From Anaeramoeba ignava BMAN (lineage: Eukaryota; Protista; Anaeramoebae): a DNA stretch of 64,000 bases. Location: NCBI GenBank assembly GCA_028826165.1, contig JAPDFW010000082.1, forward strand, positions 251,466 to 315,465, in the 5' to 3' direction. A program made the position numbers and the translations under genes. The notes under the pieces were generated by a model. The model searched no databases. It saw only the letters and a program-made list of their open reading frames with translations, and was not told the DNA's origin. The first letter of the stretch is position 1; every line of letters begins with the position of its first letter. Below, in pieces: positions 5,026 to 57,838 of this stretch.

Positions 5026-7436
5026 ATGAATTTAAATTTAATAACTTACATCATAACAGCAATATTTTTACTACAAACAATCAAGACACATCCCAAAGTA
5101 GTAATAAACAACATAACAAAAGAAGAAACACGAAACGAAACAGAAACAGAAATTGCAGGATACACATGTTATTCAGGATATATATTAGCAAACGAGACAT
5201 CAGGAGCGTATCTATTTTTTGTTTATATAGAACGAAACACGAGCAATCCATTGCAGTTAGTACTAGCAGGAGGACCAGGATGTTCATCTTCAGATGATCT
5301 TTTTCTTGCTCTTGGACCATCTTTGATCCAACCTGATGGATCCTTTATAAACAACTCTAATGCATGGACTGATATCTTCAATCTTCTCTTTATTGATAAT
5401 CCTGTTGGTTCTGGTTATTCTTATATTGATGATCCGGATGGTTATCCTACTAACCAATCTTTGGTTTCTCAACAACTTTATACTTCTTTATTGGTCTTTT
5501 TTGATAAATATAATATCTCACAAGATAAAGATTTTTATATTTATGGTGCTAGTTATTGTGGTAAATATATTCCTGCTTTGGGATATAAGATTTTACAAGA
5601 AGGTTTTGTTATTAATTTGAAAGGAGTGATTATTGGTAAGTTTTCCAAAACTAATTTTAATTTTATAAATGAATTTTAATTTTAATTTTAATTTTAATTT
5701 TAATTTTGATTTTAATTTTAATTATAATTTTAATTTTCAAAATGAATTTTAATTTTATTTTTAATTTTAATTATAATTTTAATTTTAATTTTAATTTTAA
5801 TTTGAATTTTAATTTTAATTTTAATTTTAATTATGATTTTAATTTTAATTTTAATTTTAATTTTCAAAATGAATTTTAATTTTATTTTTAATTTTAATTA
5901 TAATTTTAATTTTAATTTTAATTTTAATTTTATAAATGAATTTTAATTTTAATTTTAATTTTAATTTTAATTTTAAATTTAATTTTAATTTTAATTTTAA
6001 TTTTAATTATAATTTTAATTTTAATTTTAAAAATGAATTTTAATTTTAAATTTAATTTTGATTATAATTTTAATTTTAATTTTCAAAACGAATTTTAATT
6101 TTAATTTTATTTTTATTTTAATTTCTAAATTTAATTATAATTTTAATTTTAATTTTAATTTTAATTTTCAAAATGAATTTTAATTTTAATTTCTAAATTT
6201 AATTTTAATTTTAATTTTAATTTTAATTTGAATTATAATTTTATTTTTAATTTTAATATTAATTTTAATTTTAATTTTAATTTGAATTTTCAAAATGAAT
6301 TTTAATTATAATTTTAATTTTAATTATAATTTTAATTTATATATTAGGTGATGGAATAACAGATCCAGTAAGTCAAATGAATTATTCATATTATGCATAT
6401 GCAACTGGATTAATTGGAGAGTTACAATATCCAATAATTCATGCAAAAGAACTTGAATGCGTAAATTTAATGCAAAATGAAAGTTGGTTAGATGCAGCAA
6501 ATTGCATGATTGATATTTGGGGAGAAATTGTTAACATGTCTGGAGGTGTAAATGTTTACGATATAAGATTATATGGAGATTATAATTTCACAGCATTAGA
6601 TAACTTTATGCAATCAAACTCAACAAAAGAAACATTTGGAGTTGATTTGAATACAACTTGGTGGGATTGTGATGGTCCTCCAACTCATTATTTATACGAA
6701 GATATGCCCAAATCAGTTAAATCAGATTTCGAGGCTCTTTTGGCAAATGGAACCAAGATTTTCTTATATACTGGTCAATTTGATTTAATCATTACTTTGG
6801 TTGGTTCTTTGAATTTTTTGAGTAATGTCAATTGGGAATATATGGATGATTTTAATAATTCTACAAGAATTATTTGGAAAGTTGATGATGAAATGGCTGG
6901 TTTTGTTAAGCACTATAAAAATCTTTGGTTTGGAACAATTGTTGGTGCTGGTCATTTAGGGTAATTAATCTTCAAAATAAATTTCATTTTTATTATTTTT
7001 ACTAATTTCAATTTTCCTTTTTTTCAAAAACAAAATAGAGTTGTAAGAATTTTTTAAAAATCAATTTAAATATTAATTTAAATATTTGATTTAAATATTA
7101 ATTTAAATATTGATTTAAATATTAATTTAAATATTTATTTAAATATTAATTTAAATATTGATTTAAATATTAATTTCAATATTTGATTTAAATATTTATT
7201 TAAATATTAATTTAAATATTTGATTTAAATATTAATTTAAATATATTAATTTAAATATTAATTTGAATATTGATTTAAATATTTGATTTAAAAATATTTG
7301 ATTTAAAATCAAAAAATGAAATTTAATTGAATTCTGTTTTTTCCTTTATTAACCATAATAATATTATTAGGTTGATCAAGCAAAACACACTCATAATTTA
7401 GCTTATCGTTTCGTTAATGATCTTCCTTTCGATTAA
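5026..7436 (+). CDS. Secreted serine carboxypeptidase (peptidase S10); exons 5026-5635, 6348-6960, 7039-7042 (4-nt micro-exon), 7371-7436
   Basis: Signal-peptide-like N-terminus; GGPGCSS, IDNPVGSGYS, catalytic GASYCG, GQFDLI, and AGHLGVVDQ matching AGHxxxxDQ. Confidence 0.93.
5655..6335. repeat. Intronic (TTTTAA)n array
   Basis: Visible hexamer tandem in S10 intron 1. Confidence 0.9.
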
Positions 7437-7575
7437 TTTTTTTTTCTTTTTTTTCTTTTTTTTTTCAAATTCAAAATTCAAAAAAAAAATTATCCAAAAT
7501 AAAATTGGATGGAAAAAATCAAGGATTTAAAAAAAAATTCAAATTTTAAAAAAAAATTATTTGAATCAAATTAAA

Positions 7576-10313
7576 TCACCAACCAAGCACTTGTTGAATA
7601 CTTTTAATTAAAATATTTGACATTATTGCATGAGCTTCAACATTCTAAAAAAAAAAGAGGAAAGGAAAAATTAATTTAAAAATTATTAATTAAAAATTAA
7701 AAAAAAAGATTCCAAAATTACAGGCTATTCAAAAAAAAAAACTTTAAAATAAGAAAAAATTCTTTAAACAACCAAAAAAAAAACTTAATCAAATTACACT
7801 AAAAAAAAACAAGAAAATTAAATTTGTTAGTAAAAATTATAAAGTATTATTTAAAAACAAAAAAATAACAAACTGTGTTTGGCAACCTTCAAGATCTGGA
7901 GTAAGAATATTTGTCCAATTAACAAAATAGACATTTGGTTGTTCAAGTGAGATAATTTCTTGAATTAATTTAACTGGATCACCATACCTTTTAATATTCA
8001 AAATAATATTCAAAATAATATTTAAAATAATATTTAAAATAATATTCAAAATAATATTTATATTAATATTCAAATTAATATTTAAAATAATATTCAAAAT
8101 AATATTCAAAATAATATTCAAAATAATATTCAAAATAATATTCAAAATAATATTTAAAATAATATTTAAAATAATATTCAAAATAATATTTAAAATAATA
8201 TTTAAAATAATATTTAAAATAATATTCGAAATAATATTCAAAATAATATTCAAAATAATATTTAAATTAATATTTAAAATAATATTCAAATTAATATTCA
8301 AAATAATATTCAAAATAATATTTAAAATAATATTCAAATTAATATTTAAAATAATATTTAAAATAATATTCAAAATAATATTTAAAATAATATTTAAAAA
8401 TAATATTTAAAATAATATTTAAAATAATATTCAAAATAATATTTAAAATAATATTTAAAATAATATTCAAATTAATATTTAAAATAATATTCAAAATAAT
8501 ATTTAAATTAATATTTAAAAATAATATTTAAAATAATATTTAAAATAATATTTAAATTAATATTTAAAATAATATTTAAAATAATATTTAAAATAATATT
8601 TAAATTAATATTTAAATTAATATTCAAATTAATATTCAAAATAATATTTAAAATAATATTCAAAATAATATTCAAATTAATATTTAAAATAATATTTAAA
8701 ATAATATTTAAAAAAATATTCAAAATAATATTCAAAATAATATTCAAAATAATATTTAAAATAATATTTAAAATAATATTTAAAATAATATTTAAAATAA
8801 TATTTAAAATAATATTTAAAATAATATTTAAAATAATATTCAAAATAATATTTAAAATAATATTTAAATAAATACATTGGACCAGTAGTTATAAACATTG
8901 GGATATCTCCATAAAAATATCGATAATGTGATATTAAATCACGATATCCTTTGATAAAAACATCATCATCTGGATGAGCTATTATTAAGATAGTAAAAAA
9001 AATTCAGAGAATTAAAAAAAAAATGAATATAAAAATATAAGAATATCTGAAAATATGAAAATATACGCAATGTAGAATAATCATTTCCACCAAGATGAAG
9101 TACCATTGCATCTGGTTGCCATTTTGAATAATCCCATGAATATTGTTCTGATGTATTTGAACGGAGACTACTATTCATATAAAATCCAAAAGGACGTGCT
9201 GATGTTTTATTTGGATCGCCATAATTTCTAACAACTCCAATTCCAGAAATAGCTTCAATAAAATAATCAGCATCAAAATATCTAGAAACCTAAAATTAAA
9301 ATGTTATTTTTGAATTGAACGAAAAATAATTTGTGGTTTAATTATTAATTTTATTTTCCAATTTATTCTTACAACAGGTCCATCTATTTTGGGAATATAA
9401 ATATATAAATATAAATATAAATATAAATATAAAAATATAAATATAAATATTTACAAGCAAGATAAACGTCTTCAGTTTCTGCACTAAATAAAAATAAAAA
9501 TAAAAATAAATATTTAAAATATTTAAAATAAAAATAAATATAAATATAAATATAAATACCTAAATGGTTCATCAATAGATTTACACTCATCTCCATATCC
9601 AGCAACTACTGAATCACCTTTAAACAGAAATTCAAAAAAATTAAAATTTGAAATCGGATAAAAAATTAAATTAAAAAATTAATAAATGTTTTTTGTTTTT
9701 TGTTTTACCAATAAATTCAAGTTTTCGATTTTTTAAACTTTTTGATTCTGGATTGACATATAAATTTATTCCACCATCAATAATGGCTCTATAAAATTTT
9801 GCAATTGATAAAGCTTCTGTTCTTTTATATAAACTAACGCTATAAGTTTGTGAAGGATCCAAATTAGAAGCAATCTGATATCTTGTTTTTCCTTCATTTA
9901 CAATTAATTTAAGTTCTGAAGTTATATTAATTTTTGAATTGAATGATTGAATTATTATTTGGAAAATATTGGATGTTGTATCAGCTTCTAATGATCTTTT
10001 GTTTTGAGGAAATTTTTGAACATCATCAAATTCAACCCAAATTTCTTGTGTTGATGAAACATTAAATTGTAAATAAACTCCCTGTTTATTTTGGATAAGA
10101 ATTGATTTTAGTTAATTTTTTTTTGTGAATTGTTTTGATTTTTTATTATTTATTGTTATTTTTTTTTTGTACTGGCCAATCAATTATTGCACAATTTTCT
10201 TTTGAATCAAAAACAAATCTTCCAATAATTGAAACACTTGAATCACCAAAAACTTCTAAAATTAAAGAAAAGTAAAATAAAAAACTGATAAATTTTGAAA
10301 AATTTTGTTTCAT
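7576..10313 (-). CDS. Secreted SGNH/GDSL esterase, CE2 (acetylxylan esterase)-like; 11 exons: 10313-10173, 10081-9709, 9617-9560, 9483-9455, 9383-9373, 9289-9067, 8978-8876, 7987-7874, 7798, 7724-7722, 7644-7576
   Basis: Spliced product: signal peptide, IIGRF...IDWPG, LYKRTE, LEFIGDSVVAGYG, ETEDVYLAYG, ISGIGVVRNYG, PDAMVLHLGGND, GCQTHPNVEAH. All junctions are GT-AG. Confidence 0.88.
7992..8868. repeat. Intronic 12-mer array AAAATAATATT(T/C)
   Basis: Period-12 tandem in esterase intron; produces the spurious NIIL ORFs. Confidence 0.92.
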
Positions 10314-10424
10314 TTTGATAAGAAAAATGAAAAAAATGAAAAATGAAAAAATAGAAAATTTATTCTCTTCTTTTTTTAAAAACAAATTGATTACAAAATC
10401 CAATTTAATTTAATTTAATTTAAT

Positions 10425-13400
10425 TTAGAATTTTACACTATTATTATTATTATTGTTATTTTTATTTTGAGAAGATAATCCTTTATATTCATTAATTTCA
10501 GATAAAAGTTCTTTATAATGTAAACTTCTTAAAAATCTATAATGAAGAATTTTATCAGATATTAAACTTGAATGAACAATTTTTAAAGCTTCATCAAAAA
10601 GAGTTGCAACTGGATTTTCTCCCATTTGATTTAATTGTGATAAAATATTTTGTTGAATTTCTTGAGGAATATTAATTGTATTTTGTGAATCTTCTTTAAG
10701 AAAATTATTAATTATATATTCAGCATGAATTTTTGCAATTGAATCTTCCCATAACAAACAAAATTGTTGATAATTATGAACATGAAACCAAAAAAGAAGT
10801 TGATTTGCTTTTAATGAAGAATATTTTTCAAGATTTTGTGATTTTGATTCATAATCTTGTTCATATTCATTAACAGTAAAATTAAGTAAATGTTTTATAT
10901 AAAGATTGATAAAAAATTGTAATTTTACAAGTCGAACTGTTTCACTTTCACAATTTTTTGCTTTCATATTATTAAAAAAATCATGAACAGTTACTGATTC
11001 TGAATGTGATAAAGAATTTCTAAGAATTCTATTTCTATTTCTCTTGTTTCCACTTCCTTGGAAAAATCTTACTAAAGCTACATCTTTTTTGGATTTACTT
11101 TTTGGATTTTCTTTGTTTTTATTTTTAGTTCGATTTTGTTGACTAGTTAAATCAATTTCGTTGTTTTCTTTTTTATTGTGAAATTTTTTTATATCAAAAT
11201 CGGATCTATTTTTATTAGAATCAATTTCTAATGAATCAATCATATTTTTAAAATCAAAGGAAACTACTGTTCTTTCAGGAAGAGAATGAGGTGAATGTGA
11301 ACGTTTTTCTTTTGAATTTTGTTTTTCTTTTTCTTTTTCTTTTGATTTTTGTTTTGAATTTTGTTTTTGTTTTTCTTTTTCTTCATTAAATAATGAATTT
11401 TTTGGATCTAAATCAAAATCTGATTCAAATATTTGAGAATTAAATAAGGAATTTATAAATTCTTCTTTAATCATTTCTTGTTTGTTAAATTCTTCATCTG
11501 ATTCAAAAGTTGGAAAATAACCTTCAAATTGTGTTGAAATATTTGAATTTGTTTCTTCATTTTTAGGTAAAGAATCATTTTCAGAAAAATCACTTGATTG
11601 AATTTCATTTTGTTGAGAATTATTTTGATTACTTAATTAAGAAATATTAAAAATGAATGAATAAAGAAAAACAATTTTAATTTTTTAAAATTTGGATTAA
11701 TTTATTTTATATTATTTTATATTTATATTTATTCTTACTTATTTGAAGGAGGAGTATTTTTAAAGCCAGGAGAATCAGGAATAACCCAATCATCTTCATC
11801 TTCATCTTCATCTTCAATATTTTCATTTTGAATATTTTCATTTTGAATTAAATTTATATTTTCATTTTCAATTAAATTTATATTTTCATTTTCAATTAAA
11901 TTTATATTTTCATTTTCATTTTCAACTTCTTCAAGTTCTTGTAAAAGTTTCTCAATCTTTGTTTGATTTTCAATATTCAATTTAGATAATCTATCAATCT
12001 CAATTTGAAGTTGAGTATCTGATAAATTTTGGAACATATTAACATTAACATTAGCATTTTTATTTTGTTCAATTTTTCTTGGTGTTCCAAATAAAAGTTT
12101 AGTTTGAAAATCAATTTCTGGTTCCATTTCACCTCCACTTCCCAATTCTGTACCTAATCCTAATCTAAATTCTGTTTCTGTTCCTAAATCAATTTCTGTA
12201 TCAATATTCTCATCTGTGTCATTTTGAGCTGATTTATTTCCTGTTTGTGATTCTGTTAATGAACGAGAAAGTGAATCGGTCTTTGATTCTGATTTTGATT
12301 CTGATTTTGAATCAACAATATTATCAAATTCAAATAAAACTTCATTTTCTGTAAATTCTCCTTTCTCAAAATCAATATTAGCAAATCTTTTTTCTAAATT
12401 TGCAAATGGTGTATTATTTTCACCATCTGGTTCAAATAATAAATCTAAATTTGCCTCTTTATGCCGATCAATTAATACTTTCAAAATTTCTTCATTACAA
12501 TATTTTGTTGCAACATGAAGAACATTTCGTCCTTTTTTTGTTTTCTTTTTTTAAAAAAAAAGATTATAATCCAAAAACAAATAAAAATTATTATAAAAAT
12601 TGTAATTATAATTAAATATTCAATCTAATTTACTTGACTGTAATCAAAATGATATTTTGCTAAATTTTTGATAATTTCAATTTTCAATTTATGTTGCTGT
12701 TCATCAATTTCAATATATTTCATCAATTTTAATGCTGTATGAAAAGCATTTTCTCCTTTAGAATTTTGAATATTTAATAATTTTGAATTTGCTGATAATC
12801 TTCTTAATAAAACTTTTGAATAATAAAAAACATAAATAAAAGCAAACACAATTAAGAATATAAATTAAAAAAATTTTCTTTTTCTTTTTCTATTTCTAAA
12901 ATAATTTGGAAAAGAAATACTTTCAACAGAATTATAATTTCTTGATAAAATTGCACAATGTAATGGTGTATTTCCTGTATTTATTGATTTAATCATAATA
13001 CTTCTAAGTGGTCTTTTATTTAAATAGTCTGTAAAAATTTCATCATATGGAAAAATAGAACAAACCCAAGCTATTTTTATATAAAATTTCAATCATTTTA
13101 ATTCTCATTTCCTTTTCAAAAATATAAATATTATTTTAATTACGATTTATAAATTCAAAAAAATTTATTAATAATGGAATAAGATGTATTTTAGCTGAAT
13201 TTTCAAGAGTTGCTAATCCTTGATTCATTAAAAGATTTTGAACCCAATTTTGAATATTTTCTTTTGTTAAATTTGATTTATTTTTTGAATTCTTTTTTTG
13301 TTTTTTTTTTGAATTAAATTTTTTTAATTTAAATTTTTTTTCAATAAATTTTTTTTACTTTTTGAATATCTTTTGCCAGTTTTCGTAATTCAGTAAAACT

Positions 13401-13658
13401 ATGAATTGTATTCCAAGCTGCAAATTTAATAAATATTGTAATTTCATAAAATTTTTCTTTTGATTTCTTTTTTCTTTTTAAATCCTTTTTTTTTTTAAAT
13501 TGAAAAATTATTTTAAATTTTTGTTTTTTATTATTTCTTTTTTTCTTTTATTTATTTACATTTGGGGTTTTTGTTGTAGAATTAACAGTTATATTTATTA
13601 TTAATGAAAGTATTCTAAAAAAAATTGAAGGTGGAATTCTCTCAATTTGATCATTCAT
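10425..13658 (-). CDS. Multidomain signalling protein: PX-like N-terminus, ankyrin repeats, acidic/coiled linker, C-terminal RGS domain (7 exons)
   Basis: Ankyrin motifs GNTPLHCA, GENAFHTA, GRNVLHVA; RGS-like LLFWFHVHNYQ...IINNFLKEDSQNTINI...FDEALKIVHSSL...YRFLRSLHYKEL. PX similarity is weak and one acceptor is ambiguous. Confidence 0.72.
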
Positions 13659-13944
13659 TTGTTTTTAATTTTATTTATAATTTTTGATTTGTTTTCGTTT
13701 TTTATTTTATTTTTATTTTTATGATAATTGAAAAAAAAAAAATAATAAATCAAATAAAGAAAATATATTTAAAAAAGAAAAAAGAAAAAAAATGAAAAAT
13801 TTAAATTTGAAAAAAAAAATATTTTTAAAAATAAATGAAAAAAAAAATCAAAACAATCCATTTAAAAGAATTTAGATTTTATCCCCTAAATAAAAAATCT
13901 TTTCTCATTTCCGCATTTTTCTTGATCACAAAAGAATTTGAAAT

Positions 13945-14310
13945 TAAAAAATAATTTAAAAATAATTTAAAAATAATTTAAAAATAATCTAAAAATAATT
14001 TAAAAATAATTTAAAAATAATTTAAAAATAATTTAAAAATAATTTAAAAATAATCTAAAAATGATTTAAAAATAATTTAAAAATAATCTAAAAATAATCT
14101 AAAAATAATTTAAAAATAATCTAAAAATAATCTAAAAATAATCTAAAAATAATCTAAAAATAATCTAAAAATAATCTAAAAATAATCTAAGAATAATCTA
14201 AAAATAATTTAAAAATAATCTAAAAATAATTTAAAAATGATTCTAAAAATAAATTAAAAATGATTTAAAAATGATTTAAAAATAAATGATTTAAAAATGA
14301 TTTAAAAATA
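13945..14310. repeat. Intergenic 11-mer array AAAAATAAT(T/C)T flanked by about 65-bp imperfect direct repeats
   Basis: Period-11 tandem; flanking copies near 13892-13957 and 14353-14419. Confidence 0.88.
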
Positions 14311-14609
14311 AATGTCAATTTTGTAATAAATTTAAATTATTTCAAAAAAAACAAAAAATCTTTTCTCATTTTTTCATTTTTTTTGATCACAAAAGAATTT
14401 GAAATTTAAAAAATAATTTGTTTTTCTTTTCTTTTCTTTGTTTTAAATTTAAAAATTTCCTTTATTTTTCAAAAAAAAAAATTTCTTATTCGAAAAGAGA
14501 AAAAAATTTTGAAAAAAAAAAGTGGAACAAAAATTTTTCAAAAAGAAAAAGAAAAAGAAAAAGAAATTTAAATTTAAATTCAAATTCAAATTTTTTTATA
14601 TTTAATAAA

Positions 14610-15155
14610 TTAATTCCAAGAATCAAATAATTCTTCCCATTTCTTTTGAGTTTTTTCATTAAAAACATGACCAATTTTTTCAATTTCATCTAAAATACAT
14701 TCTCTAATTAATAAATAATTAGAAAAAATGTTTTTCTTTGTTTGAATTAATTCTAAAAAAGAAGAAATTGTTAAAAAATCTGGTCCAATTTTAGATTCCC
14801 AACAAATATTTAAATTATTCATTTGTAATTGATATTTATCAAAATAATTAAAAATTTCTTCATAAATAGATAAAAAATTTTGATAAATTCCTTCAAATTG
14901 TAGCATTAGTTTTCTTAATTCATAAAGTAAATTTTCTATTGATTTAATTTGATTTGAAATTAAATCGTTTTTAATATTTGAAAATCCTATTAAAATTCCA
15001 TAACATTTTTCTTTAAAAAAAAGTGATGTTCTTGAAGAAATATCAAGAATTTTTTCAATAATAAGTTTTGAATAATCATTTACTTCTTTCCAATCTTCAA
15101 AAACTTGATTAATTTTTTTATAAAAAGATTGAAATTTTTTAAAATGTTTTTCCAT
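14610..15155 (-). CDS. C1orf109/AIRIM-like helical protein, single exon
   Basis: 181-aa ORF with W...SR...YGIL..F..IK..LI..Q...IE.LL..L...M..F pattern recalled for the family; TCATTTT-type motif upstream. Confidence 0.55.
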   Translation of the reverse strand: MEKHFKKFQSFYKKINQVFEDWKEVNDYSKLIIEKILDISSRTSLFFKEKCYGILIGFSNIKNDLISNQIKSIENLLYELRKLMLQFEGIYQNFLSIYEEIFNYFDKYQLQMNNLNICWESKIGPDFLTISSFLELIQTKKNIFSNYLLIRECILDEIEKIGHVFNEKTQKKWEELFDSWN

Positions 15156-36365: not shown

Positions 36366-36385
36366 AAATTTTATATAAAAAAAAA

Positions 36386-39300
36386 ATGAATCCAAGAAAA
36401 CAAAAAGGAAAGAAAAATACAACAAATAAAAAAAAGGGAGTTGGTAGAGCAATTTTAAATAAAAAATATGGAAAACAACAACAAAACAAAAAACAAAACA
36501 AAAAAGAAATTGCAAAAGTAAATAAAATTGAAAAAATAAATTGAAAAAATAAATTGAAAAAAATAAATTGAAAAAATTAAATTGAAAAATAAATTGAAAA
36601 ATTAAAAAGAAAAATATTGAAATTGCTGATCAAAATCGAAGAAAAGAACCAACTTTAGTTTCTAAAACTGAAACTTCACAACTTGAAGAATTTTTAGAAA
36701 CTGCATTAACTGCTGATAAACAATTTATGACAACTGAATATAATGTAAAAATTATTGATGCAAGTAATTATAGTTCATTTTATGAATCAGAAATTAGAGT
36801 GACGAAAGAACAACAAGAATTGCAAAAAAAGCATGAACCTGACTTAAAAATTCCACGCAGGTAGTTTCAAAATAGCATTTAAAATATCAAAAAAATGTTT
36901 AATTTGTTATTTTTAAATTTTTTCTTTTAAATTATTTTTAAATTATTTCTTTTTTGAATTTTATTTAGACCTAAATGGACTTATTCAACAACTCCAACAG
37001 AACTTGAAAAAATAGAACAAGAAACCTTTTTAGAATGGCGAAGAAATATTGCAAATTGTTTTTAAAATTAAAGTCTAAAATTAAAATTAATAATAAAATC
37101 AAAATCAAAATTAAAATTAAAATTAATATTAAAATTAAAATTAAAATTAAAATTAAAATTAAAATTAAAATTAAAATTAAAATTAAAATTAAAATTAAAA
37201 TTAAAATTAAAATTAAAATTTATTAAAATTAAAATTAAAATTAAAATTAAAATTAAAATTAAAATTAAAATTAAAATCAAAATTATTAAAATCAAAATTA
37301 AAAATTAAAATTAAAATTAATTAAAATTAAATTAAAAATTAAAATTAAAATTAAAATTAAAATTAAAATTAAAATTAAAATTAAAATTAAAATTAAAATT
37401 AAAATTAAAATTAAAATTAAAATTAAAATTAAAATTAAAATTAAAATTAAAATTAAAATTAAAATTAAAATTAAAATTAAAATTAAAATTATTAAAATTA
37501 AAATTAAAATTAAAATTAATATTAAAATTAATATTAAAATTAAAATTAATATTAAAATTAAAATTAAAATTAAAATTAATATTAAAATTAAAATTAAAAT
37601 TAATATTAAAATTAAAATTAAACTTAGACTTGAAGAAAATGAACTTCTTGTTCTTTCTCCTTTTGAAAAAAATCTTGAAATTTGGAGACAACTTTGGAGA
37701 GTTTTGGAAAGAAGTCAGATCATTTTACAAATTGTTGATGCAAGAAATCCCCTTCTTTTTAGATCTAAAGATCTTGAGAATTATGCAAAAGAAATAGATC
37801 CAAATAAAAAAAATATTCTTCTTCTAAATAAAGCAGATTTAGTTCCTCTTAGATATCGTAAATTATGGGCAAAATATTTTATTGAAAAAGGAATAGATTT
37901 TATTTTTTTTTCAGCAGCTGAAGATATGAAATTAGGAGATATTATTCAAAATCAATTTAGTGAAAATGGAAATGAAAATCAAAATCAAAATGAAAATGAA
38001 AATCAAAATGAAAATGAAAATCAAAATCAAAATCAAAATCAAAATCAAAATCAAAATCAAAATCAAATTGAAAATCAAATTGAAAATCAAAATCAAAATC
38101 AAAATGAAAATGAAAATCAAATTGAAAATCAAAATCAAAATCAAATTGAAAATCAAATTGAAAACCAAATTGAAAATCAAATTGAAAATCAAATTGAAAA
38201 CCAAATTCAAAATCAAATTGAAAATCAAAATCAAATTGAAAATCAAATTGAAAATCAAAATGAAAATGAAAATCAAATTGAAAATGAAAATCAAAATCAA
38301 ATTGAAAATGAAAATAAAATTGAAAATAAAAATCAAATTGAAAATGAAAATCAAATTGAAAATCAAAATCAAAATGAAAATCAAATTGAAAATCAAAATC
38401 AAATTCAAAATCAAATTCAAAATCAAATTGAAAATCAAATTGAAAATAAAAATGAAAATGAAAATCAAATTGAAAATAAAAATGAAAATGAAAATCAAAT
38501 TGAAAATAAAAATGAAAATCAAATTGAAAATGAAAATCAAATTGAAAATCAAAATCAAATTGAAAATGAAAATCAAAATCAAATTGAAAATCAAATTGAA
38601 AATCAAAATCAAAATCAAAAAGGAAAAGAAATCAATCAATGTGAGATTTTTAGTACAAAAGATCTTATTCAAACACTAGAAAAATTAGGAGAAGAATTTG
38701 GATTTTTGAAAGATAGAGAAAGAGTAGTTATTGGGATGGTTGGATATCCAAATGTAGGAAAAAGCTCAACAGTAAACATACTACGGGGAATGAAAAAAGT
38801 AGCAGTAAGTTCAACACCTGGAAAAACGAAACATTTACAGACAATAGATATAGGAGAAAAAGTGACACTTTGTGATTGTCCAGGGTTAGTACTTCCAAGT
38901 TTTGTGGGAAGTAAACACGAATTTTTATGTAATGGAATCCTCTCAATTGATCAACTGAGAGATTTTCGCGGTCCAATAACTTATATTTGCTCAAAAATAC
39001 CAAGAGAAGCATTTGAAATGCTTTATGGAATCAAACTTCCCCCTCATAGACTTGGTGAAACTCGAAAAGATCATGTTAAACCATCAGATCTTCTTCAAGC
39101 ATATTCAAAAATGCGCAGTTGGATGTCAAAAGCTGGTATTCCTGATCAGTCAAGAGCTGCTCGAGTGATTTTGAAGGATTTTGTTTCAGGAAAATTACTT
39201 TATTGTCATCTTCCATTAAACTCAAATCAAAATGAAAATCAAAATCAAAATTTAAATCAAAATTTAAATCAAAATTTAAATCAAAATCAAAAATCAAATC

Positions 39301-43300: not shown

Positions 43301-45252
43301 TTTGATTTTGATTTTGAATTTGAATTTGAATTTGATTTTGAATTTGATTTTCATTTTGAATTTGATTTCGATTTTGATTTAGATTTAAATTTTGATTTTG
43401 ATTTTGATTTTCATATTGATTTAGATTTTGATTTTCATTTTGATTTAGATTTAGATTTTGATTTTGATATTGATTTTTATACTATTAAAAGAACTAGAAC
43501 ATTGGCCAATAATAGGTTCAAGAGTGACATAAATAACTCCACCACGTGAAATATAATTAAAACTTGTCTAAATTTTAATAAAATAAAATAAAATAAAGAT
43601 TTTAGAAAGATAACAAAACAGCATTAAAATAGTATCCAAATATACTTTAACTTCCCAAGAAGTACAAACAGGAGGATTTGCAGGAAATAACTCCATAATA
43701 TAAAAAGATAAATAAGCAGAATGAAAAGTAGACATAAAATCCATCATTTCTGAATTACTTTTATTAGCAAAAGGACCAATAGGATTTGATTCGCAAAGAA
43801 TGTATTTTTCTGTATTTATTAAAAAATGATTAAATAATTATTTCTTGATGAGAAACACTTTATATTAGCAATCCCTTTTTATATAATACCTTCTGTTGTT
43901 TCAAGATTTCTTCTTCCTAAAGTTGATATATCATTAAATTTGGATTTGGAATATTGGCTAATTGTTAATGTTGGACACTTGATACTTCCGTTATAATTTC
44001 GTGGAAAACTTTTTTTGAATTTGATTTTGATTTTGAATTTGATTTTGATTTTAATTTTGAATTTGATTTTCATTTTGATTTTGATTTTGATTTTGATTTT
44101 GATTTTGATTTTGATTTTGATTTTGATTTTGATTTTGATTTTGATTTTGATTTTAAATTTTGATTTTGATTTTGATTTTGATTTTCATTTTTAATTTGAT
44201 TTTTAAATTTTGATTTTGATTTTGATTTTGATTTTGAATTTTAATTTTGATTTTGATTTTGATTTTGATTTTGATTTTGAATTTGATTTTGATTTTGATT
44301 TTGATTTTGATTTTGATTTTGATTTTAATTTTGATTTTGATTTTGAATTTGATTTTGAATTTGATTTTGAATTTGAATTTGATTTTGATTTTGAATTTGA
44401 ATTTTGATTTTGAATTTGATTTTGATTTTGAATTTGATTTTGATTTTGATTTTGATTTTGATTTTGATTTTGATTTTGATTTTGAATTTTGAATTTGATT
44501 TTGATTTTGATTTTGATTTTGATATTGATTTTGAATTTGATTTTGAATTTGATTTTGATTTTGATTTTGATTTTAATTTTGATTTTAATTTTGATTTTCA
44601 TTTTGATTTTGATTTTGAATTTGATTTTGATTTTGATTTTGATTTTGAATTTGGATTTGATTTTGAATTTGAATTTATAAATGAATTTATAAATGAATTT
44701 GATTTTGATTTAATTACTCAAAAAATCCCACAACAGTTGAATTGAATGTAAAATATTGCTCAACAATATCACCAATAAGTTGAATAAAATCATGGGAACT
44801 AGTCACAGTAAATTCAAGTTCACCATCCATTGTATCGAAATAAGAACTATAACCTGGTAGAAAAACTTCTGCTAACATTGATTCTGTATTTGATATAAAG
44901 GGTATTTGATGTTTTGTTCTGTAAATAACCTATTGAGTAAAAATTAGTCATTAAATTAAATACAAAATAATGAATATAGAAAGTTTTTATATGCTGATGA
45001 ATATATTGTTTTTTTTTGTTTTGGATATTTTTTTGATTGATTGATTTTTTGTTATTTTTTTTTGGAAATTAATTCAATTTTAACTTGTGCTGTTAAAAGT
45101 GCAAATATTGTAACTCTAAATAGAAATTTATACGGTATTCTGTGATATTTTATTAATTTTGCCCATGGACTTAATGTTAGGTAATCTTTTGGTGGAATTG
45201 GTTTCAATTTAAAACCACAAAATGTTGTTGTTTTTTCTTGATTTGTTGTCAT
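40294..45252 (-). CDS. Mucolipin (TRPML)-like cation channel; 10 exons
   Basis: LSPWAKLIKYHRIPYK N-terminus, luminal loop with Cys pairs, TM segments, pore LFAVLNGDVIRDTF, IYVYTFICIFMYVWLNIFITII. Nine GT-AG introns, frame-consistent. Confidence 0.9.
41060..42125. repeat. Intronic composite AATATT(T/C)/AATTT array with a longer higher-order unit
   Basis: Visible tandem in mucolipin intron; 41825-42085 translates as repeated NIELNIKYLFKL. Confidence 0.88.
42860..44710. repeat. Two intronic (TTTTGA)n arrays (42860-43475 and 44015-44710) separated by exons
   Basis: Visible tandems in mucolipin introns. Confidence 0.88.
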
Positions 45253-45329
45253 TTTTATTTATTTTTTCAAAAAAAAAAGAAAAACAAAGAAAAAAATGGT
45301 TTACGAAAAAAAATAAAATTCTTTTCTTT

Positions 45330-46300
45330 CATTATTTTGAATATATTAAATATTTTGAATATTTTGGATATATTAATTATTTTGAATATATTAAATATTT
45401 TGGATATATTAAATATTTTGGATATATTAAATATTTTGAATATTTTGGATATATTAAATATTTTGAATATATTGAATATTTTGAATATATTGAATATTTT
45501 GGATATATTAAATATTTTGGATATTTTGGATATATTAAATATTTTGAATATTTTGAATATTTTGAATATTTTGGATATTTTGGATATATTGAATATTTTG
45601 GATATTTAATTATTTTTGAATATATTGAATATATTAAATATATTCAATATTTTAAATATTTTGGATATATTAAATATATTGAAATTATTTTAAATATTTT
45701 GGATATTTTTGATATTAATTTTGGATATTTTAAATATTTTAAATATTTTCATTATTTTGAATATTTTGAATATTTTGAATATTTTGAATATTTTGGATAT
45801 ATTGAATATTTTGAATATATTGAATATTTTGAATATTTGGATATTTTAAATATATTAATTATTTTAAATATTTTGAATATTTTGGATATTTTGAATATTT
45901 TGAATATATTGAATATTTTGAATATTTTGGATATATTAAATATTTGGATATTTTGAATATTTTGAATATTTTGGATATATTAAATATTTTTGAATATTTT
46001 GAATATATTAAATATTTTGAATATTTTGGAATATTTTGGATATTTTAAATATATTAAATATATTAAATATATTGAATATTTTGGATATATTAAATATTTT
46101 GGATATTTTTGAATATATTAAATATTTTGGATATATTAAATATTTTGAATATATTAAATATTTTGAATATATTGAATATTTTGAATATATTAAATATTTT
46201 GAATATTTTAAATATTTTGAATATTTTAAATATATTAAATATTTTGAATATTTTAAATATTTTGGATATTTTAAATATTTTGGATATATTAAATATTTTC
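45330..46300. repeat. Intergenic 9-mer array (ATATTTTGA/ATATATTAA/ATATTTTGG)
   Basis: Period-9 tandem between the NAA80-like 3' end and the mucolipin start. Confidence 0.9.
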
Positions 46301-46379
46301 AATTATTCTAATTATTTTCATTGTTTTCATTATTTTCAATATTTTCATTATTTTCATTATTTTGATTAGTTTGAATATA

Positions 46380-48507: not shown

Positions 48508-49076
48508 TTTAATTTAGAAAAAAAAAAAGAAATTAAAGAAAGAAAAAAAATGAAAAAAAAAAATAAAAAAAATTTTTTTTGTTTAAATAGAAAAAACTGA
48601 CTAATAATTATTATTTTTTAAGTAATAATTTTATTTATTTTTGTTTTATTCAGAAATGATAAAAATTAAATGTTTTTCTTCTTTTTTATGTTGATGTTTT
48701 TATTCAGAAATGATAAGAATTAAATGTTTTCTTCTTATTTTTGTTTTCCTTTTTGTTTTTGTTTTTGTTTTTTTAAAAGAAAGAAAAAAGGAGAAAAAAA
48801 GAGAGAAAAAAATTTTTTTTCTTTTTGGGTCAAAATAAAATTAAAAAATTAAAAAATTGAAAAGGAAATTTAATATTAAAATTAAAATGAGTATTATTTT
48901 TAGTTAATTTTAGTTAATTTTATTTAATTTTATTTATTAAATTTTTGGATTAGAATAAGTTGAGTCATTTTTTTTTTAATAAATTTTTTTTTTTCACTTT
49001 TTCACTTTTTCATTTCTTTTAAATTTAGAACTTAAAAAGAAAAATAAAGAAAAATAAAGAAAAACAAAGAAAAACA

Positions 49077-52000
49077 ATGGAATTTATAACAGAATTAACA
49101 AAAGAATGTGAAAACGCAAAATATCTTATAAATGATTTTATCCAAAAAATTTTAACACTTGATATTTCAATTCCATTTGAATCAGATGTTGAATATTTAG
49201 AAGTAAAAAAAACAAAAACAAAAACAAATAAAAACAAAAATAAATGGAAAAACGTATTTAATTAAATTTGTTTTTTTTTTGGATTTGAATTTAGCTTATG
49301 GAAGCTCATTATATGATGTCTAGTCTTACTTTAGATGGAAATAATAATATTAGTGATGTTCTTGGTGTCCCACAACCAAAAGATAAACCTTTAAGTAATT
49401 TTCGTTTTTTTTTTCTTTTAATTTTTCTTTTTCTTAATTAAATTTTTTTTTTTTTGCTTTTCTTCTTTCTTTTTTTTAGATTTTGAGGAAACTCAAAAAA
49501 TGGTTATTTCTATTCAAAAAGTTAAAACTAAAATTGAAGAAATCAAAGAAGCTAAACTTAAAACTATGGCTGTAATTATATTTTTATTTTATTTTTCTTA
49601 TTCTTTCTTTTATTCTTTATTTTATTCTTTCTCTCCTTTTTTTTTTAATAGAGAAAACCAAGAATTATTAGATGGGCACAAAAATTAAAAACCACAGAGA
49701 AAGAATCATTAGCTCTTCATTATATTTTATTACTACATGTTGGAAGCAAAGTAATCCCTTTCCAATCAAATTAAATCAAATCAAATCAAATCAAATCAAA
49801 ATTTAAATCAATATTTAAATCAAAATTTAAATCAATATTTAAATTAATATTAAAATCAATATTTAAATCAATATTTAAATCAATATTTAAATCAATATTT
49901 AAATTAATATTTAAATCAATATTTAAATTAATATTTAAATCAATATTTAAATCAATATTTAAATCAATATTTAAATCAATATTTAAATCAATATTTAAAT
50001 CAATATTTAAATCAATATATTTAAATCAATATATTTAAATCAATATATTTAAATCAATATTTAAATCAATATTTAAATCAATATTTAAATCAAATATTTA
50101 AATCAATATTTAAATTAATATTTAAATTAATATTTAAATTAATATTTAAATAAATTTTTAAATTAATATTTAAATCAATATTTAAATTAATATTCAAATT
50201 AATATTTAAATTAATATTTAAATCAATATTTAAATCAATATTTAAATCAATATTTAAATCAATATTTAAATCAATATTTAAATCAATATTTAAATCAATA
50301 TTTAAATCAATATTTAAATCAATATTTAAATCAAATATTTAAATCAAATATTTAAATCAATATTTAAATCAATATTTAAATCAATATTTAAATCAATATT
50401 TAAATCAATATTTAAATCAATATTTAAATCAATATTTAAATCAATATTTAAATCAATATTTAAATTAATATTTAAATTAATATTTAAATTAATATTTAAA
50501 TTAATATTTAAATCAATATTTAAATCAATATTTAAATCAATATTTAAATCAATATTTAAATCAATATTTAAATTAATATTTAAATCAATATTTAAATTAA
50601 TATTTAAATTAATATTTAAATCAATTATTTAAATCAATATTTAAATCAATATCAAAATTAATATTTAAATCAATATTTAAATCAATATATTTAAATTAAT
50701 ATTTAAATTAATATTTAAATTAAATCAAAATTAAAATATTTAAATAAAATCAAAATCAAATCATAAATTTAGATTCGTGGATTGAAAATTAGAGAATCAC
50801 AAGATCCAGTTAGTTTAGCACTTCATGCCAAAATGACTATTACAGAATTACTTGAATTCGTTAAACCACAAAGACTTTATATCAAACAAGGAATCTTTGA
50901 ATATTTTGATACAACACATGCTCTTCAAAACAACATGTCACTCAAACAAGAAATCATTCTTGCATTAGTTGGACAAGATTTAACAGGAGAACAATCACTT
51001 AAAATTGATAATACAGCACTTTCAGAAGTTCTTGATGAAGAAAAAGATCCAGAAGAACTTAAAAAGAAAAAAGAATTGGAAAAGAAAATTCGTGAAGAAG
51101 AAAAACTCAAGAAAGAACAAGAAATGAATAAAAATGTTCCTGATTTTGAAGACGAATCAGATCTTTACAACTTCATTTCGCAACAAGTAATCGCAGAAAA
51201 AACAAAACCAGATGAAATCGAGGATGAATTGGAACAACAGTTAAAAATTGAAATGGAAAATCAATTAGAAAACCAATTAGAAAATGAATTAGAAAATGAA
51301 TTAGAAAATGAATTAGAAAATCAATTAGAAAATCAATTAGAAAATCAATTAGAAAAAGAAGATGATTTAGATAAAGATAAAGAAGATAAAGATAAGGATG
51401 AAGATGAAGACCAAATGAAACCTTATAAAACAGACTTGGAATATCTTGAAGACCATTTTTCACGGTTTACAATGTTGATTAGAGTCTCCAATGAAAAACA
51501 AAACGAGGCTCAATCAAGATACTATGGTGGATCATCCCAATCAGAAGCTGTGATTCGGGAGTACTCAGCAAAGGAAAGAGTCGCCCGAATGAAATGTGAG
51601 AAAAGATTGGAACTCACAAAAGAAGCAGGAGATTGGCTTCCAAGAATGGAGAGATTAGCTGAGGCAAGAAAGTTGAATGAGTTTGAAAAATATGTTGTTT
51701 TGTTTTTAATTGGATCTAACATTTCCCAAGACATGCAGAACGCAGGAGCTGCACGGGGATCAAATGTGGAATCAATTCTGAGGATATTTTGCGAAAACCT
51801 TCAAGATCAAATTTCCAAAAGAAAGTATTTCTACAAAAGCGGAGCATTGATTCGTGATGGAATCATTCGGGCATCAGGATCAGGATTGGATAACAATCTC
51901 AACGATCTGTACTTGATGGTGGATCGAAGAATGCTTGACTTTGTTATGGGATTAGACACTGAGATGAGTGAGTTGATTGAGGGATCCCATTTATACACAA

Positions 52001-53574
52001 GTAAAGTCAAACTTGAATCGGTTATTCTTCCTGAAGAGCAAAAAAAACTAATAACAGAAACAATGAAGAACTACGAAAGTTTCACGAAATGCAGAAAAAA
52101 GCTTGGATTGGATGAAGTTATCAGCTATGGAGGCGGAATTGTAATGCTTTTCTATGGCGCTTCAGGAACAGGAAAGACAATGATGGCAAACGCACTTGGA
52201 AATGAATTGGGTCGCAAAATCATGCTTGTCAACTTTCCTTCTTTGGGTCAAATGAGCGCAGGAGAGAACATGAAGTACATCTTCCGAGAAGCAAAAATTC
52301 ACCAGGCTATCTTGTTCTTTGATGAATGTGAAGCCTTGTTTGAATCAAGAGAACACGGGAAATATGATGTCAATTTATTATTAACGGAAATTGAAAGATT
52401 TGACGGAATTATCATTTTGGCAACAAATCGATCCTTTGATTTGGATGAAGGAATGCATCGAAGAATAACGGTCGCTGTTGAGTTTGCCAAGCCAGATCCA
52501 CTTTTAAGAGAACGAATTTGGATGACTCATTTACCTCAAACACTGAAATCATCAGAAGATGTTGATATCAAAGCTCTTGCAATGAAATACGAATTGACTG
52601 GAGGATTTATTAAGAACGCGGTTCTTTCCGCTTTGAGTGTTGCTGTTTCAAGAGATGGACCTGATAATGTTGTTCTGACTCAATCGGATCTTGAACAAGG
52701 AGCAAAATTGCAATTGAGAGGAAGATTGAGAATGACTGAATTCCACCGCAGAGTGGTTCCACAACGAGGACTTGATAATCTTGTTCTTCCGAAGGAAACC
52801 GTCGAGACACTCATCGAAATCATCAATTCCGAAAAGGCAAGACAGGTTTTATACAATTGGGGATTCGACAAGAAAATTGGATTTGAAAGAGGAACAACTG
52901 TCCTCTTTACTGGACCACCAGGCACAGGAAAAACACTTGCTGCTGAAGCTATTGGTTTCGAGATTGGAAAACCCTTGAAGGTTATCAACGCGGCTGAGGT
53001 TCTTTCGAAATGGGTTGGAGATACACCAAAGAATATCGATTCTTTATTTGAAGAAGCCACTATGCATGATTCATTGCTTGTTTTCGATGAAGCTGAAGGT
53101 CTTTTTGGAAGGAGACACGAGACTCAAGATACCTCCACTGATAGATACGCAAATATTGATGTTGGACTCTTACTTTATCACATGGAGAAATTCAACGGTG
53201 TTGTCATCTTATGCACTAACGTTATTGGCGCTATTGATCCAGCTTTTTTCAGAAGAATGAAATACATTGTCGAGTTCAAAATCCCAGAAATCCAACTTCG
53301 TGAGGCTCTTTGGAAGAAATTGATTCCTGATTCTGCTCCTAAAGCTGATGATATTGATTTCTCAAAATTGGCAAAACTTTATGAATTTGCCGGTGGAAAT
53401 ATTAAAAATTCCGTTTTTAGAGCTGCTTCTCGTGCTGCTTTAAGACCTCAAGATAAACGTTTAATTACAATGGATGATTTGATTAATGCTGCTAATGAAG
53501 AGAATATTAAAGTTAAAAGAAGTCGTGGTGAACTTTTGGATAATGAAAAGGAAAAGAATTCAATTTATGTTTAA
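49077..53574 (+). CDS. Double-domain AAA+ ATPase of bacterial Afp15/Pvc15-like type; 5 exons
   Basis: Walker A GASGTGKT and GPPGTGKT; Walker B FFDE and VFDE; DRYANIDVGLLL; LTGGFIKNA/FAGGNIKNS. N-terminal module (SDVEYLE / TDLEYLE...PR..R.A) occurs twice. Four GT-AG introns upstream of 50773. Confidence 0.9.
49770..50760. repeat. Intronic 12-mer array ATATTTAAAT(C/T)A
   Basis: Period-12 tandem in AAA ATPase intron 4. Confidence 0.92.
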
Positions 53575-53832
53575 GCTTTTATTCTTTTCTTTTCTTTTTA
53601 ATTTTCATCAATTTCTTCCGTTTTTTTTACTTCTTTTTTTACTTCTTTTTTTACTTTTCATTGAAAAAGAAAATAATAATTTAAAAAATGAAAAACGGAA
53701 AAAAATTCTTTTTCTTTTTCTTTTCTTTTCTTTTCTTTTCTTTTCTTTTGATCCACTTTTTTTTTTTAATTTGAAAAAAAAATTTTTCTTGATTTGTTTT
53801 TTTTCATTTTTCTTCTTTTTAATTTTTCTAAA

Positions 53833-56800
53833 ATGTTCTTATTAAATTTTATTTGTTTTCTTTTTCTTTTATTTCTTGGTTTTTCAATGAAATTAGATTC
53901 AGATTTTACATCAGATAAAAACTGGGATTTTTATACAAAATTTTGTTTTGACCAAAGTTCAAGCAGTTTGTTTTATTCTTATTATTTAAAAAGATAAAAA
54001 TTTTCGAAAATGATTTTTTTTTTTTTGCTTTTTTTTTTATTTAATTTAATTTAATTTAATAAGATTATGGTAATTTTACCTGGGATATTACAACAGATTC
54101 AGTTTTTTATCAATTTGATTTTTATGATGATAGTTCAAATTCTTGGGAGGATGTTAGTTTAAAATTCAATTAAAATCAAAATCAAAATCAAAATCAAAAT
54201 CAAAATCAAAATCAAAATTAAAATCAAAATCAAAATCAAAATAAAATTTAAATCAAAATCAAAATCAAAATTAAAATCAAAATCTAAATCAAAATCACAA
54301 TTCAAAATTAAAATCAAAATCAAAATCAAAATCAAAATTCAAAATCAAAATCAAAATTAAAATCAAAATTAAATTCAAAATCAAAATCAAATTCAAATTC
54401 AAAATCAAATTCAAAATGAAAATTTAAATCAAAATTAAAATCAAAATCAAAATCAAAATTAAAATCAAAATCAAAATCAAAATCAAAATTAAAATCAAAA
54501 TCAAAATCAAAATTAAATTCAAAATCAAAATTAAATTCAAAATCAAAATCAAAATCTAAATCAAAATCTAAATCAAAATCAAATTCAAAATCAAAATCAA
54601 AATTAAAATCAAAATCGAAATTAAATTCAAAATCAAAATCGAAATAAAATTTAAATCAAAATCAAAATCAAAATTAAAATCAAAATCTAAATCAAAATCA
54701 CAATTCAAAATTAAAATCTAAATCAAAATCAAAATCAAAATCAAAATCAAAATCAAAATCAAAATCAAAATCAAAATCAAAATTAAAATCAAAATCAAAA
54801 TCAAAATCAAAATCAAAATCAAAATCAAAATCAAAATCAAAATCAAAATCAAAATCAAAATTAAAATCAAAATCAAAATCAAAATCAAAATCAAAATCAA
54901 AATCAAAATCAAAATCAAAATCAAAATCAAAATCAAAATCAAAATCAAAATCAAAATCAAAATCAAAATCAAAATCAAAATCAAAATCAAAATCAAAATC
55001 AAAATTCAAAATCAAAATCAAAATCAAAATCAAAATCAAAAATCAAAATTAAAATCAAAATCAAAATCAAAATCAAATTCAAAATCAAAATCAAAATCAA
55101 AAAATTCAAAAAAAAATCAAAATCAAAATAAATCAAAATCAAAATCAAAAATCAAAATCAAAATCAAAATCAAAATTCAAAAATCAAATTTAAAAATCAA
55201 AATCAAAATCAAAATCAAAAAATTAAAATTAAAATCAAAATCAAAATCAAAATCAAAATCAAAATCAAAAAATCAAAATTCCAAATTAAAAATCAAAAAT
55301 AAAAATTCAAAATCAAAATCAAAACCAAAATCAAAATCAAAATCAAAATTCAAATCAAAATCAAAATCAAAATTTAAAATCAAAATCAAAATTTAAAATC
55401 AAAATCAAAATCAAAATCAAAATCAAAATCAAATTCAAAATCAAATCAAAATCAAAATTTAAAAATCAAAACCAAAAATCAAATCAAAATCAAATTCAAA
55501 ATCAAAATCAAAATTAAAATCAAATTCAAAATCAAAATCAAAATCAAAATCAAATTCAAAATTCAAAATCAAATTCAAAATCAAATTCAAAATCAAATTG
55601 AAATCAAAATCAAAATCAAAATCAAAATCAATATTAAAATTAAAATCAAATTCAAAATCAAAATCAAAATCAAAATCAAAATCAAAATCAAATCAAAATC
55701 AAAATCAAAATCAAAATCAATATTAAAATTAAAATCAAATTCAAAATCAAAATCAAAATTAAAATCAAAATCAAAATCAAATTCAAAATCAAAATTTAAA
55801 TCAAATTCAAATTCAAAATCAAAATCAAATTCAAAATCAAATTCAAAATCAAATTCAAAATCAAATTCAAAATCAAATTCAAAATCAAATTCAAAATCAA
55901 ATTCAAATTCAAATTCAAAATCAAAATTAAAATCAAAATCAAATTCAAATCAAAATCTAAAAGGTTTATCATTCAAGTGATTCTTGCTCAACAAAATCCT
56001 CAAAAGCTATAGATATTTCACAAATTGAATCAAAAGTTCCTGGTTTTGATGAATTTTTAGATATTTCAAGACCAAGATTTTGGTATTTTGCAGTTTCTAA
56101 TTGTCCAAATAATCGAATTAGTTTAACTCATGTTGATGTTCATATTTGGAACAGTGGTGCTTCAAAATTAAACAAAGAATTTTCTTGTAATGAACAAGGT
56201 ATCAAAATTCAAAATCAAAATCAAAATCAAATTTAAATCAAAATCAAAATTTTAATCAAAATTTAAAATTTAAATCAAAATCGAAATCAAAATCAAAATC
56301 AAAATCAAAATTAAAATCAAAATCAAAATCAAAATCAAAATCAAAATCAAAATTTAAATCAAAATCAAAATCAAAATCAAAATTTTAATCAAAATCAAAA
56401 TCAAAATTTAAAATTTAAATTTAAATCAAAATCTAATTCAATATCAAAATTAAAATTAAGGATTGGTTGTTATGTTTTTGATTTTTATGATAATTTTCAT
56501 CATTATGCTTTCCATTTATACTTTTGAATCATGGAAACTTTTTAAAGAAGGGAATTTCCATGCTGTATTTTTTAACATAAATTCAAAACCAAAAAATTCA
56601 ATTCCAAAAATCTAATTTAAAAAAAATTTTCCGATTTTTTGATATTTTAAGTTGGCTCGTATTTCTTTTTTAGCTCTTGTTTTTGAAACAGTTGGATTAA
56701 TCTGCGTTTTCGCTCATTTTGCTGCTTATGCAAATGATGGAAAAGGATCATTTGGTCTTAGAGTAAAAAAAAATTCCCAAATTTTTTATTATTATAAAAA

Positions 56801-57838
56801 CAATTCAACATTGAAATTTATATCAAAAAAATTTTTTTCTTTTATTTAACGGGGAACTAAATAATCTATTCTTTTAAAATTGAAAATATTTTGGATTAAT
56901 AAAATAATTAAAGGTGTTTGGAGAACGTAAGTTTTAAATATTTAATATTTAATATTTAATATTTAGTATTTAATATTTATTATTTAATATTTATTATTTA
57001 ATATTTTATATTTATTATTTATTATTTAATATTGAATATTTTATATTTATTATTTAATATTTATTATTTAATATTTTATATTTATTATTTAATATTTAAT
57101 ATTTAATATTTAATATTTACTATTTTATATTGAATATTTATTATTTTATATTTAATATTTTATATTTTATATTTTATATTTAAAATTTAGTTCTTGAGGT
57201 TATCGCATCTATTATTTTAATGCTATTTGTAATTTTAGTTGCAAAAGGTTGGACAATTTCACGTAGTTATATATCTTACAAAAAAGTATTATTTGGTGTT
57301 ATATTGGTACTTTTAGTACTTTACATAATAATGCATATTGTTGGATATTTAACAATGGATAGAGCAACAACAACTTATATTTGGGAAACTACTCCTGGAA
57401 TTATGATTCTTGTTATTCGCATTTTGATTTTAATTTGGTTCATTTTTGAGATTTCAAATACTTTTAAAATTGAAAAAGATTTTGATAAGAAAAAATTTTA
57501 TAAAGTATTTGGATTCATTTTTGGTATTTGGTTCATTTCTCTTCCAATTATTGTTTCTATTAGTTCTACTGTATCTAATACTTATCGAGAAAAAGTAAAT
57601 TATTTTTTTAAAAAAAAAAAAAAAGTGGAACAAAATTTTTATTATTTAAATTTTTATTATTTAAAAGACTGCAACTGCTTTATTTTTGATTTTTGAAATG
57701 TTTTCTTACTTTATTGTTATTTACTTATTATGGCCTGCAAAAACTTATCATTTTTTCAATATTCAAGCAAAAACAACAGAAGAAAGAATGAAATTATCAA
57801 AAACTGAAACAGCAGAAAGAGCTTTTGATGAATTATAA
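53833..57838 (+). CDS. GPR180/TMEM145-like multi-pass membrane protein; 8 exons including a 13-nt micro-exon 56914-56926
   Basis: Signal peptide, KFCF, YDD, RPRFWYFAVSNC, EFSCNEQG, YANDGKG, LVAKGWTISR, WFISLP, REK, LLWP. Confidence 0.85.
54170..55960. repeat. Intronic (AAAATC)n array, about 1.8 kb
   Basis: Longest intron in the window; an internal block near 54240-54315 recurs near 54643-54718. Confidence 0.92.

Follow-up and report, generated by a model that had tools for sequence, protein, structure and literature searches.

We analysed a window of 64,000 nucleotides (nt) from the genome of the anaerobic protist Anaeramoeba ignava BMAN, with a G+C content of 10-34% along its length, in which five micro-exons of 1, 3, 4, 11 and 13 nt lie in three genes: a CE2-family SGNH esterase gene, an S10 serine carboxypeptidase gene and a GPR180/TMEM145-like gene (Table 1). 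An initial annotation of the window had listed these five exons in 20 genes; all of them were found where it had placed them, between AG and GT sites, and its gene number was checked only roughly. Each micro-exon has AG upstream and a GTAA-type donor downstream, and the flanking introns, 71-328 nt long, are canonical GT-AG introns. Four of the five lengths (1, 4, 11 and 13) are not multiples of three, as the initial annotation had also said. The three genes read as open frames once the micro-exons are included, and each micro-exon restores the frame together with conserved residues that are kept in related genes. All five exons were confirmed as real, since transcripts or sister copies of the genes carry the amino acids that they encode. 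Searches were run with single exons or with proteins returned by the search tools, and the spliced models were compared locally with the retrieved proteins. The donors that follow the micro-exons are almost always GTAA, in a small sample.

Table 1 Genes, exons and introns described in the text (window coordinates; a slash marks an exon boundary)
Feature	Position	Strand	Description
CE2-family SGNH esterase gene	7576..10313	-	11 exons, ten introns, all GT-AG
CE2 exons 1-6	10313-10173, 10081-9709, 9617-9560, 9483-9455, 9383-9373, 9289-9067	-	
CE2 exons 7-11	8978-8876, 7987-7874, 7798, 7724-7722, 7644-7576	-	
11-nt exon ATGGACCTGTT	9373-9383	-	ag/exon/gtaaga; finishes a Tyr codon and adds Gly-Pro-Val (YGPV)
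1-nt exon T	7798	-	ag/T/gtaatt; completes CA/T, the catalytic His codon (third base)
3-nt exon CCT	7722-7724	-	ag/CCT/gtaatt; encodes the Pro after the catalytic His
Three introns, 75, 73 and 77 nt	7645..7873	-	surround the 1-nt and 3-nt exons; each with its own GT, T-run and AG
S10 serine carboxypeptidase gene	5026..7436	+	exons 5026-5635, 6348-6960, 7039-7042, 7371-7436
4-nt exon AGTT	7039-7042	+	ag/AGTT/gtaaga; two codons after the catalytic His
GPR180/TMEM145-like gene, part	56652..57594	+	exons 56652-56762, 56914-56926, 57191-57594; PF10192
13-nt exon GTGTTTGGAGAAC	56914-56926	+	ag/exon/gtaagt; encodes VFGE and the first base of a Leu codon

The CE2 model has a coding sequence of 1125 nt that specifies 374 amino acids in one open frame. 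Its product was assigned to CE2 by sequence features, namely an N-terminal beta-sandwich followed by an SGNH domain with a GDS nucleophile and a C-terminal His in a GCxxHP motif; one exon gave a weak match to PF17996, and single-exon queries matched the CE2 structures 2w9x, 4xvh, 2wab and 2waa in the PDB. The model contains both GDSVVAGYG and GCQTHP, and its esterase activity is a predicted one. The His completed by the 1-nt exon is the block V His of the SGNH fold and is invariant among homologues, and AG-T-GT occurs only once in the interval that holds this exon. When the model was aligned with 45 full-length homologues from a representative search, no gap fell at either micro-exon site and the His-Pro pair was invariant: YLA-YGPV-VSRYFDA fits the family pattern Y..YGP..AR, GCQT-H-P-NVEAHAIM fits the invariant block GCxxHP..H..M, and the C-terminus ends in the Trp of the family. 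By the model, the spliced reading across 7987 to 7576 should include ACACATCCTAATG. Direct joining of the outer exons would give a frameshift and a stop after seven codons; the product predicted for micro-exon skipping ends in GCQTQMLKLMQ and loses the catalytic His. The first of the three introns that surround the 1-nt and 3-nt exons contains TACTAAC. In all three, the AG is preceded by an uninterrupted run of 9-11 T bases, which none of the other seven introns of the gene has; the runs may represent reinforced signalling, the number of introns being small. Other introns here measure 71-91 nt, and intron 7 (888 nt) is swollen by 73 copies of a 12-nt AT-rich tandem repeat (7992-8868).

A transcript-derived protein corresponding to this gene was found by a word search that started from the A. 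flamelloides orthologue (P0001). This protein (P0273, 374 residues) is a TransDecoder open reading frame from a Trinity-type contig in the EukProt transcriptome of A. ignava; it is the same as the CE2 model at 373 of 374 residues, the difference being K97Q, and it includes both YGPV and GCQTHPNVEAH. The transcript comes from the window gene, because the assembly has a single CE2 locus, and the bases of the 1-, 3- and 11-nt exons are thereby seen, at the protein level, in mature mRNA. Residue 97 (9932-9934, minus strand) is Lys in the genome and Gln in both transcript-derived isoforms, which could reflect an error in the assembly or a difference between strains or alleles. The public model of the gene, KAJ5072202.1 (P0284), includes the 11-nt exon and has QF where HP belongs; this fits the use of a donor four bases further on (7868-7873, minus strand), which keeps the frame and loses the catalytic His. 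The 90% protein cluster to which the CE2 transcript belongs holds no isoform that skips a micro-exon; its sole variant (P0285, isoform i5, 301 residues) retains intron 6 (8979-9066, minus strand) and ends inside it.

The S10 gene was modelled with four exons and introns of 712, 78 and 328 nt (coding sequence 1293 nt, 430 amino acids). Its two large exons match PF00450 with E values of 1.7e-44 and 1.3e-19; the catalytic-His motif GAGHL (GxGH in the family) aligns with GAGHM of cathepsin A, GAGH also matches the His region of CPY, and the Ser motif, GESYxG in the family, reads GASYCG here. The four bases AGTT turn GG/ into GGA GTT (Gly-Val) and fix the frame of the last exon (VDQAKH...RFVNDLPFD), so that the C-terminus, GAGHLGVVDQAKHTHNLAYRFVNDLPFD, aligns without a gap to the GHxxPxDQP....M..RF....PF of homologues. 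Skipping the 4-nt exon would yield GHLGLIKQNTLII and a stop, a replacement of the S10 C-terminus. A search of the PDB with the 21-residue last exon gave no match. Intron 3 is swollen by about 20 copies of a 12-nt AT-rich tandem repeat (7053-7307).

The genome holds 12 S10 copies that are 38-69% identical, and the 4-nt exon was found at the same codon in all 12, as AGTT, ACCT or TCCT, between introns that have diverged in sequence and length. The ACCT and TCCT versions restore the canonical Pro. In two of them, L009 and L011, a single 407-codon exon covers the gene as far as GHLS, and the only two introns seen are those that flank the micro-exon. A match at 430 of 432 residues was found between the L009 model, ACCT included, and the transcript-derived protein P0272 (432 residues), which supports the 4-nt exon in mature mRNA at the protein level through this paralogue rather than through the window's own S10 copy. 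Missing the 4-nt exon has left each of the seven public S10 models of A. ignava examined (KAJ5069195-7, KAJ5074442, KAJ5074446, KAJ5070520 and KAJ5073477) with a wrong or truncated C-terminus: the models either terminate within the first intron, run on from the micro-exon into the second, or leave the micro-exon out and shift the frame. The unit beside the catalytic His is WCCT followed by A both in CE2 (CA/T/CCT/AAT) and in most S10 copies (TC/ACCT/ATG); the window's own S10 gene differs, with AGTT followed by G. This sharing is either a coincidence of Pro codons or a target preference and stays unexplained.

In the third gene, the transmembrane-domain profile PF10192 matched the region 57193-57594 with an E value of 3.6e-32 and the exon 56652-56762 with one of 0.0059, which places it in the GPR180/TMEM145 family. 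The match to the upstream exon ends at position 65 of the profile and that to the downstream exon starts at 71; the 13-nt exon together with the split codon supplies exactly the five residues in between (66-70). Two paralogues keep this exon, as GTTTTTGGAGAAC (L016) and ATTTTTGGAGAAG (L017), between unrelated introns. A word search with the L017 exon returned no transcript-derived GPR180-like protein, a blank that we did not count as evidence. In 2-kb windows the GC skew is extreme at two places, -0.80 at 54001-56000, in a long intron of the GPR180-like gene, and +0.58 at 44001-46000.

A further interval, 37054-37630 in an LSG1 GTPase gene, was considered as a sixth micro-exon case and was rejected: it contains no AG...GT pair and only three G bases. 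The intron there, between ...RRNIA and LEENELL, lacks a GT donor in the right phase, and the spacing of homologues would require a TT...AG intron or an assembly error.

Micro-exons of this size could in principle be artefacts, that is, chance AG...GT pairs in broken genes or in a mis-assembled region, the true transcripts coming from elsewhere. Closely spaced AG and GT pairs are indeed common by chance in AT-rich DNA, and a genome-wide count of TTTTAG-N(k)-GTAAGT was at chance level, with 42, 46 and 43 matches for k of 1-13, 14-26 and 27-39 against about 64 expected, a count that has no power. The near-complete identity of the CE2 transcript protein to the model of a single-copy locus, and the conservation of the 4-nt exon in 12 copies and of the 13-nt exon in three, argue against this explanation, and we regard its probability as negligible.

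The initial annotation had further proposed, as one of two alternatives, that the frame-shifting micro-exons act as splice-controlled switches of hydrolase activity. On this view regulated skipping would turn the secreted hydrolases off by way of a truncated or His-less protein or of nonsense-mediated decay. Skipping would indeed remove the catalytic His of CE2 and replace the C-terminus of S10, and a catalytic His is the site of micro-exons at two independent loci. The other observations give the proposal no support: four of the five lengths shift the frame, the full-length CE2 transcript has its 1-, 3- and 11-nt exons, the cluster of that transcript holds no skipping isoform, the 4-nt exon is kept across the 12 S10 copies, and the 11- and 13-nt exons lie away from catalytic residues. 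Regulated micro-exons of animals, moreover, are mostly frame-preserving. We consider such a switch very unlikely. The related statement that the smallest exons lie at active sites held for two independent loci, CE2 and S10, a sample of two that is subject to ascertainment, as a reader most readily notices sites with known motifs. In CE2 and in the L009-type S10 genes alike, introns are most tightly clustered beside the His. The placement at a catalytic His is thus real at two loci, and we treat it as unexplained rather than as meaningful.

The origin of the introns was examined by comparison with A. flamelloides, as the initial annotation had suggested for a sister species. In that species the CE2 orthologue (L002:3001-4152) has no introns: its 384 codons form one continuous frame, with 40% G+C against 22% in its flanks. 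The phylogenetic tree pairs the two Anaeramoeba CE2 proteins as sisters (support 1.0) and places them within a Bacteroidota-like clade that includes Geofilum and Prolixibacteraceae (0.96). Because the pair sits in this clade, CE2 is, on the evidence of the sequences, of bacterial descent, and all ten A. ignava introns are younger than the transfer. The two A. flamelloides S10 genes read CAT ATG TCA CCT ATG without interruption and have no intron beside the His. In one A. flamelloides S10 gene an exon of about 36 nt encodes GGPGCSSLWG (L018:1847-1882), and the introns are placed differently from those of A. ignava. The A. ignava genome, as published, is 80.65% A+T and has 32,108 introns, 2.13 per gene, with a modal length of 76 nt and a G+C content of 8.14% (PMC11550330). 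Two sources for the introns beside the micro-exons were rejected. They are not tandem copies of one another, since they resemble each other no more closely than unrelated introns of that gene do; nor do they qualify as introner-type (transposon-derived) introns, as there are no near-identical copies in the genome, the best non-self matches of the introns in 7645-7873 being 66-74% identical and of low complexity only.

We conclude that the micro-exons are probably ordinary constitutive coding exons, 1-13 bases long, that resulted from closely spaced intron gain. The idea of the initial annotation that intron gain ignores exon size is supported by the intronless CE2 gene of A. flamelloides, by the post-transfer age of the CE2 introns and by the S10 genes of A. 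flamelloides that lack an intron beside the His. In the A. ignava lineage, numerous short introns, AT-rich and about 75 nt long, would have entered coding sequence regardless of the distance to the next intron, and each of them would be recognised across the intron (intron definition). Because introns of about 75 nt, with signals of their own, would be recognised in this way, exon length would be irrelevant. Around exons of 1-4 nt the neighbouring introns would be removed one after the other, since the 3' site of one intron overlaps the 5' site of the next, in a manner resembling recursive splicing. In Drosophila and vertebrates, recursive splicing uses AG/GT ratchet sites, which are zero-length exons. 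The likeness lies in adjoining 3' and 5' splice sites, which have to be used in succession; in A. ignava, unlike in that process, 1-4 coding bases stay in the mRNA, and the introns are of about 75 nt rather than tens of kilobases. Inclusion of the micro-exons would be under purifying selection, because skipping any of the four whose length is not a multiple of three would produce a frameshifted, truncated protein. That four of the five have such a length is as expected of unselected intron positions, for which two thirds are expected.

Several points weigh against this reading. Transcript support is confined to protein sequences and to the 1-, 3-, 4- and 11-nt exons, that of the 4-nt exon being through the paralogue. 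The S10 tree is too weakly supported to tell gain of the intron pair in A. ignava from its loss in A. flamelloides. The micro-exons are also about three times commoner than random placement predicts, in a post hoc comparison of three selected genes. When introns were placed at random in the three genes, keeping the intron number of each, 1.45 exons of 13 nt or less were expected and five were seen (P=0.008), while for exons of 4 nt or less the expectation was 0.46 and the observed number three (P=0.009); these P values are too small because the genes were chosen for having micro-exons. The initial annotation had named a frequency no higher than that of random placement as an outcome that would speak against its view; the frequency was above it, at least in this window. 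Lastly, the sole two introns of L009 and L011 lie 4 nt apart, and a gap of 4 nt or less between two introns in a 1.3-kb gene has P=0.006, which suggests clustered rather than size-blind random gain.

Such clustering would refine the conclusion that the micro-exons are constitutive products of closely spaced intron gain: new introns would arise preferentially beside existing ones, so that micro-exons are over-produced, whether by repeated-break repair at one site, by an insertion hot spot or by duplication of an intron with its neighbouring bases. We put this forward tentatively, as a possibility on the unlikely side. It would account for the threefold excess, for the three introns within 4 coding bases in CE2 and for the spacing in L009 and L011, and the WCCT-A unit that CE2 shares with most S10 copies is in keeping with it. 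The window's own S10 gene lacks that unit, however, and the flanking introns are no more alike than unrelated ones, with genome matches confined to the low-complexity, 66-74% identical stretches described above; the statistics, too, are post hoc and cover three selected genes.

The initial annotation had considered the micro-exons an undescribed feature, which is correct only in part. They are mentioned neither in the A. ignava genome paper nor in its supplements (PMC11550330), whereas exons of 15 nt or less, one-base exons included, have been described in plants. The 1-nt exons of Arabidopsis APC11 and of VPS55 in land plants (PMC4674806, PMC8831610) consist, like the one in CE2, of one coding base flanked by canonical GT-AG introns, and the reference annotation missed them; splicing is constitutive in the plant genes and probably in CE2, and in both cases relatives with an intronless gene lack the exon. 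The A. ignava case differs in its host, an anaerobic protist, in that the 1-nt exon is directly followed by a 3-nt exon, giving three introns in four coding bases, and in lying within the catalytic His codon of a gene that came from bacteria; its support is a transcript-derived protein and not reverse transcription PCR. Plant exons of 15 nt or less are widely misannotated (PMC8831610). Like those of A. ignava they encode parts of conserved domains, some are adjacent (5 nt and 12 nt in rice), and gene predictors get them wrong; unlike the CE2 and S10 micro-exons, which are missing from the sister species, they are mostly ancient across land plants. The density in the A. ignava window was five micro-exons in about 20 genes. 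Neuronal micro-exons of animals are likewise very short exons overlooked by standard aligners (PMC7821500), but they are alternative cassettes whose lengths are mostly multiples of three, whereas four of the five in A. ignava are frame-shifting and no alternative use was seen.

What is new is the lineage, the 1-nt and 3-nt pair inside the catalytic His-Pro, the occurrence in enzyme cores of lengths that are not multiples of three, and a post-transfer date for the CE2 introns. As far as we could find, the exon at 7798 appears to be the first 1-nt spliceosomal exon with transcript-level support outside land plants, and the adjoining 1-nt and 3-nt exons provide a stringent natural test of minimum exon length. 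CE2 illustrates intron gain cleanly: descended from bacteria, the gene has no introns in A. flamelloides and ten in A. ignava. Enzyme predictions for A. ignava need micro-exon-aware re-annotation, because the public CE2 model and seven public S10 models are wrong. A broader proposition, which we consider doubtful, is that for the A. ignava spliceosome no exon is, in practice, too small and that intron gain is locally clustered. If it were true, exons of 13 nt or less would number in the hundreds to thousands across the genome and be systematically mis-annotated, among them frame-shifting exons in catalytic codons and runs of two or more tiny exons, and some of these might regulate the production of active enzyme.

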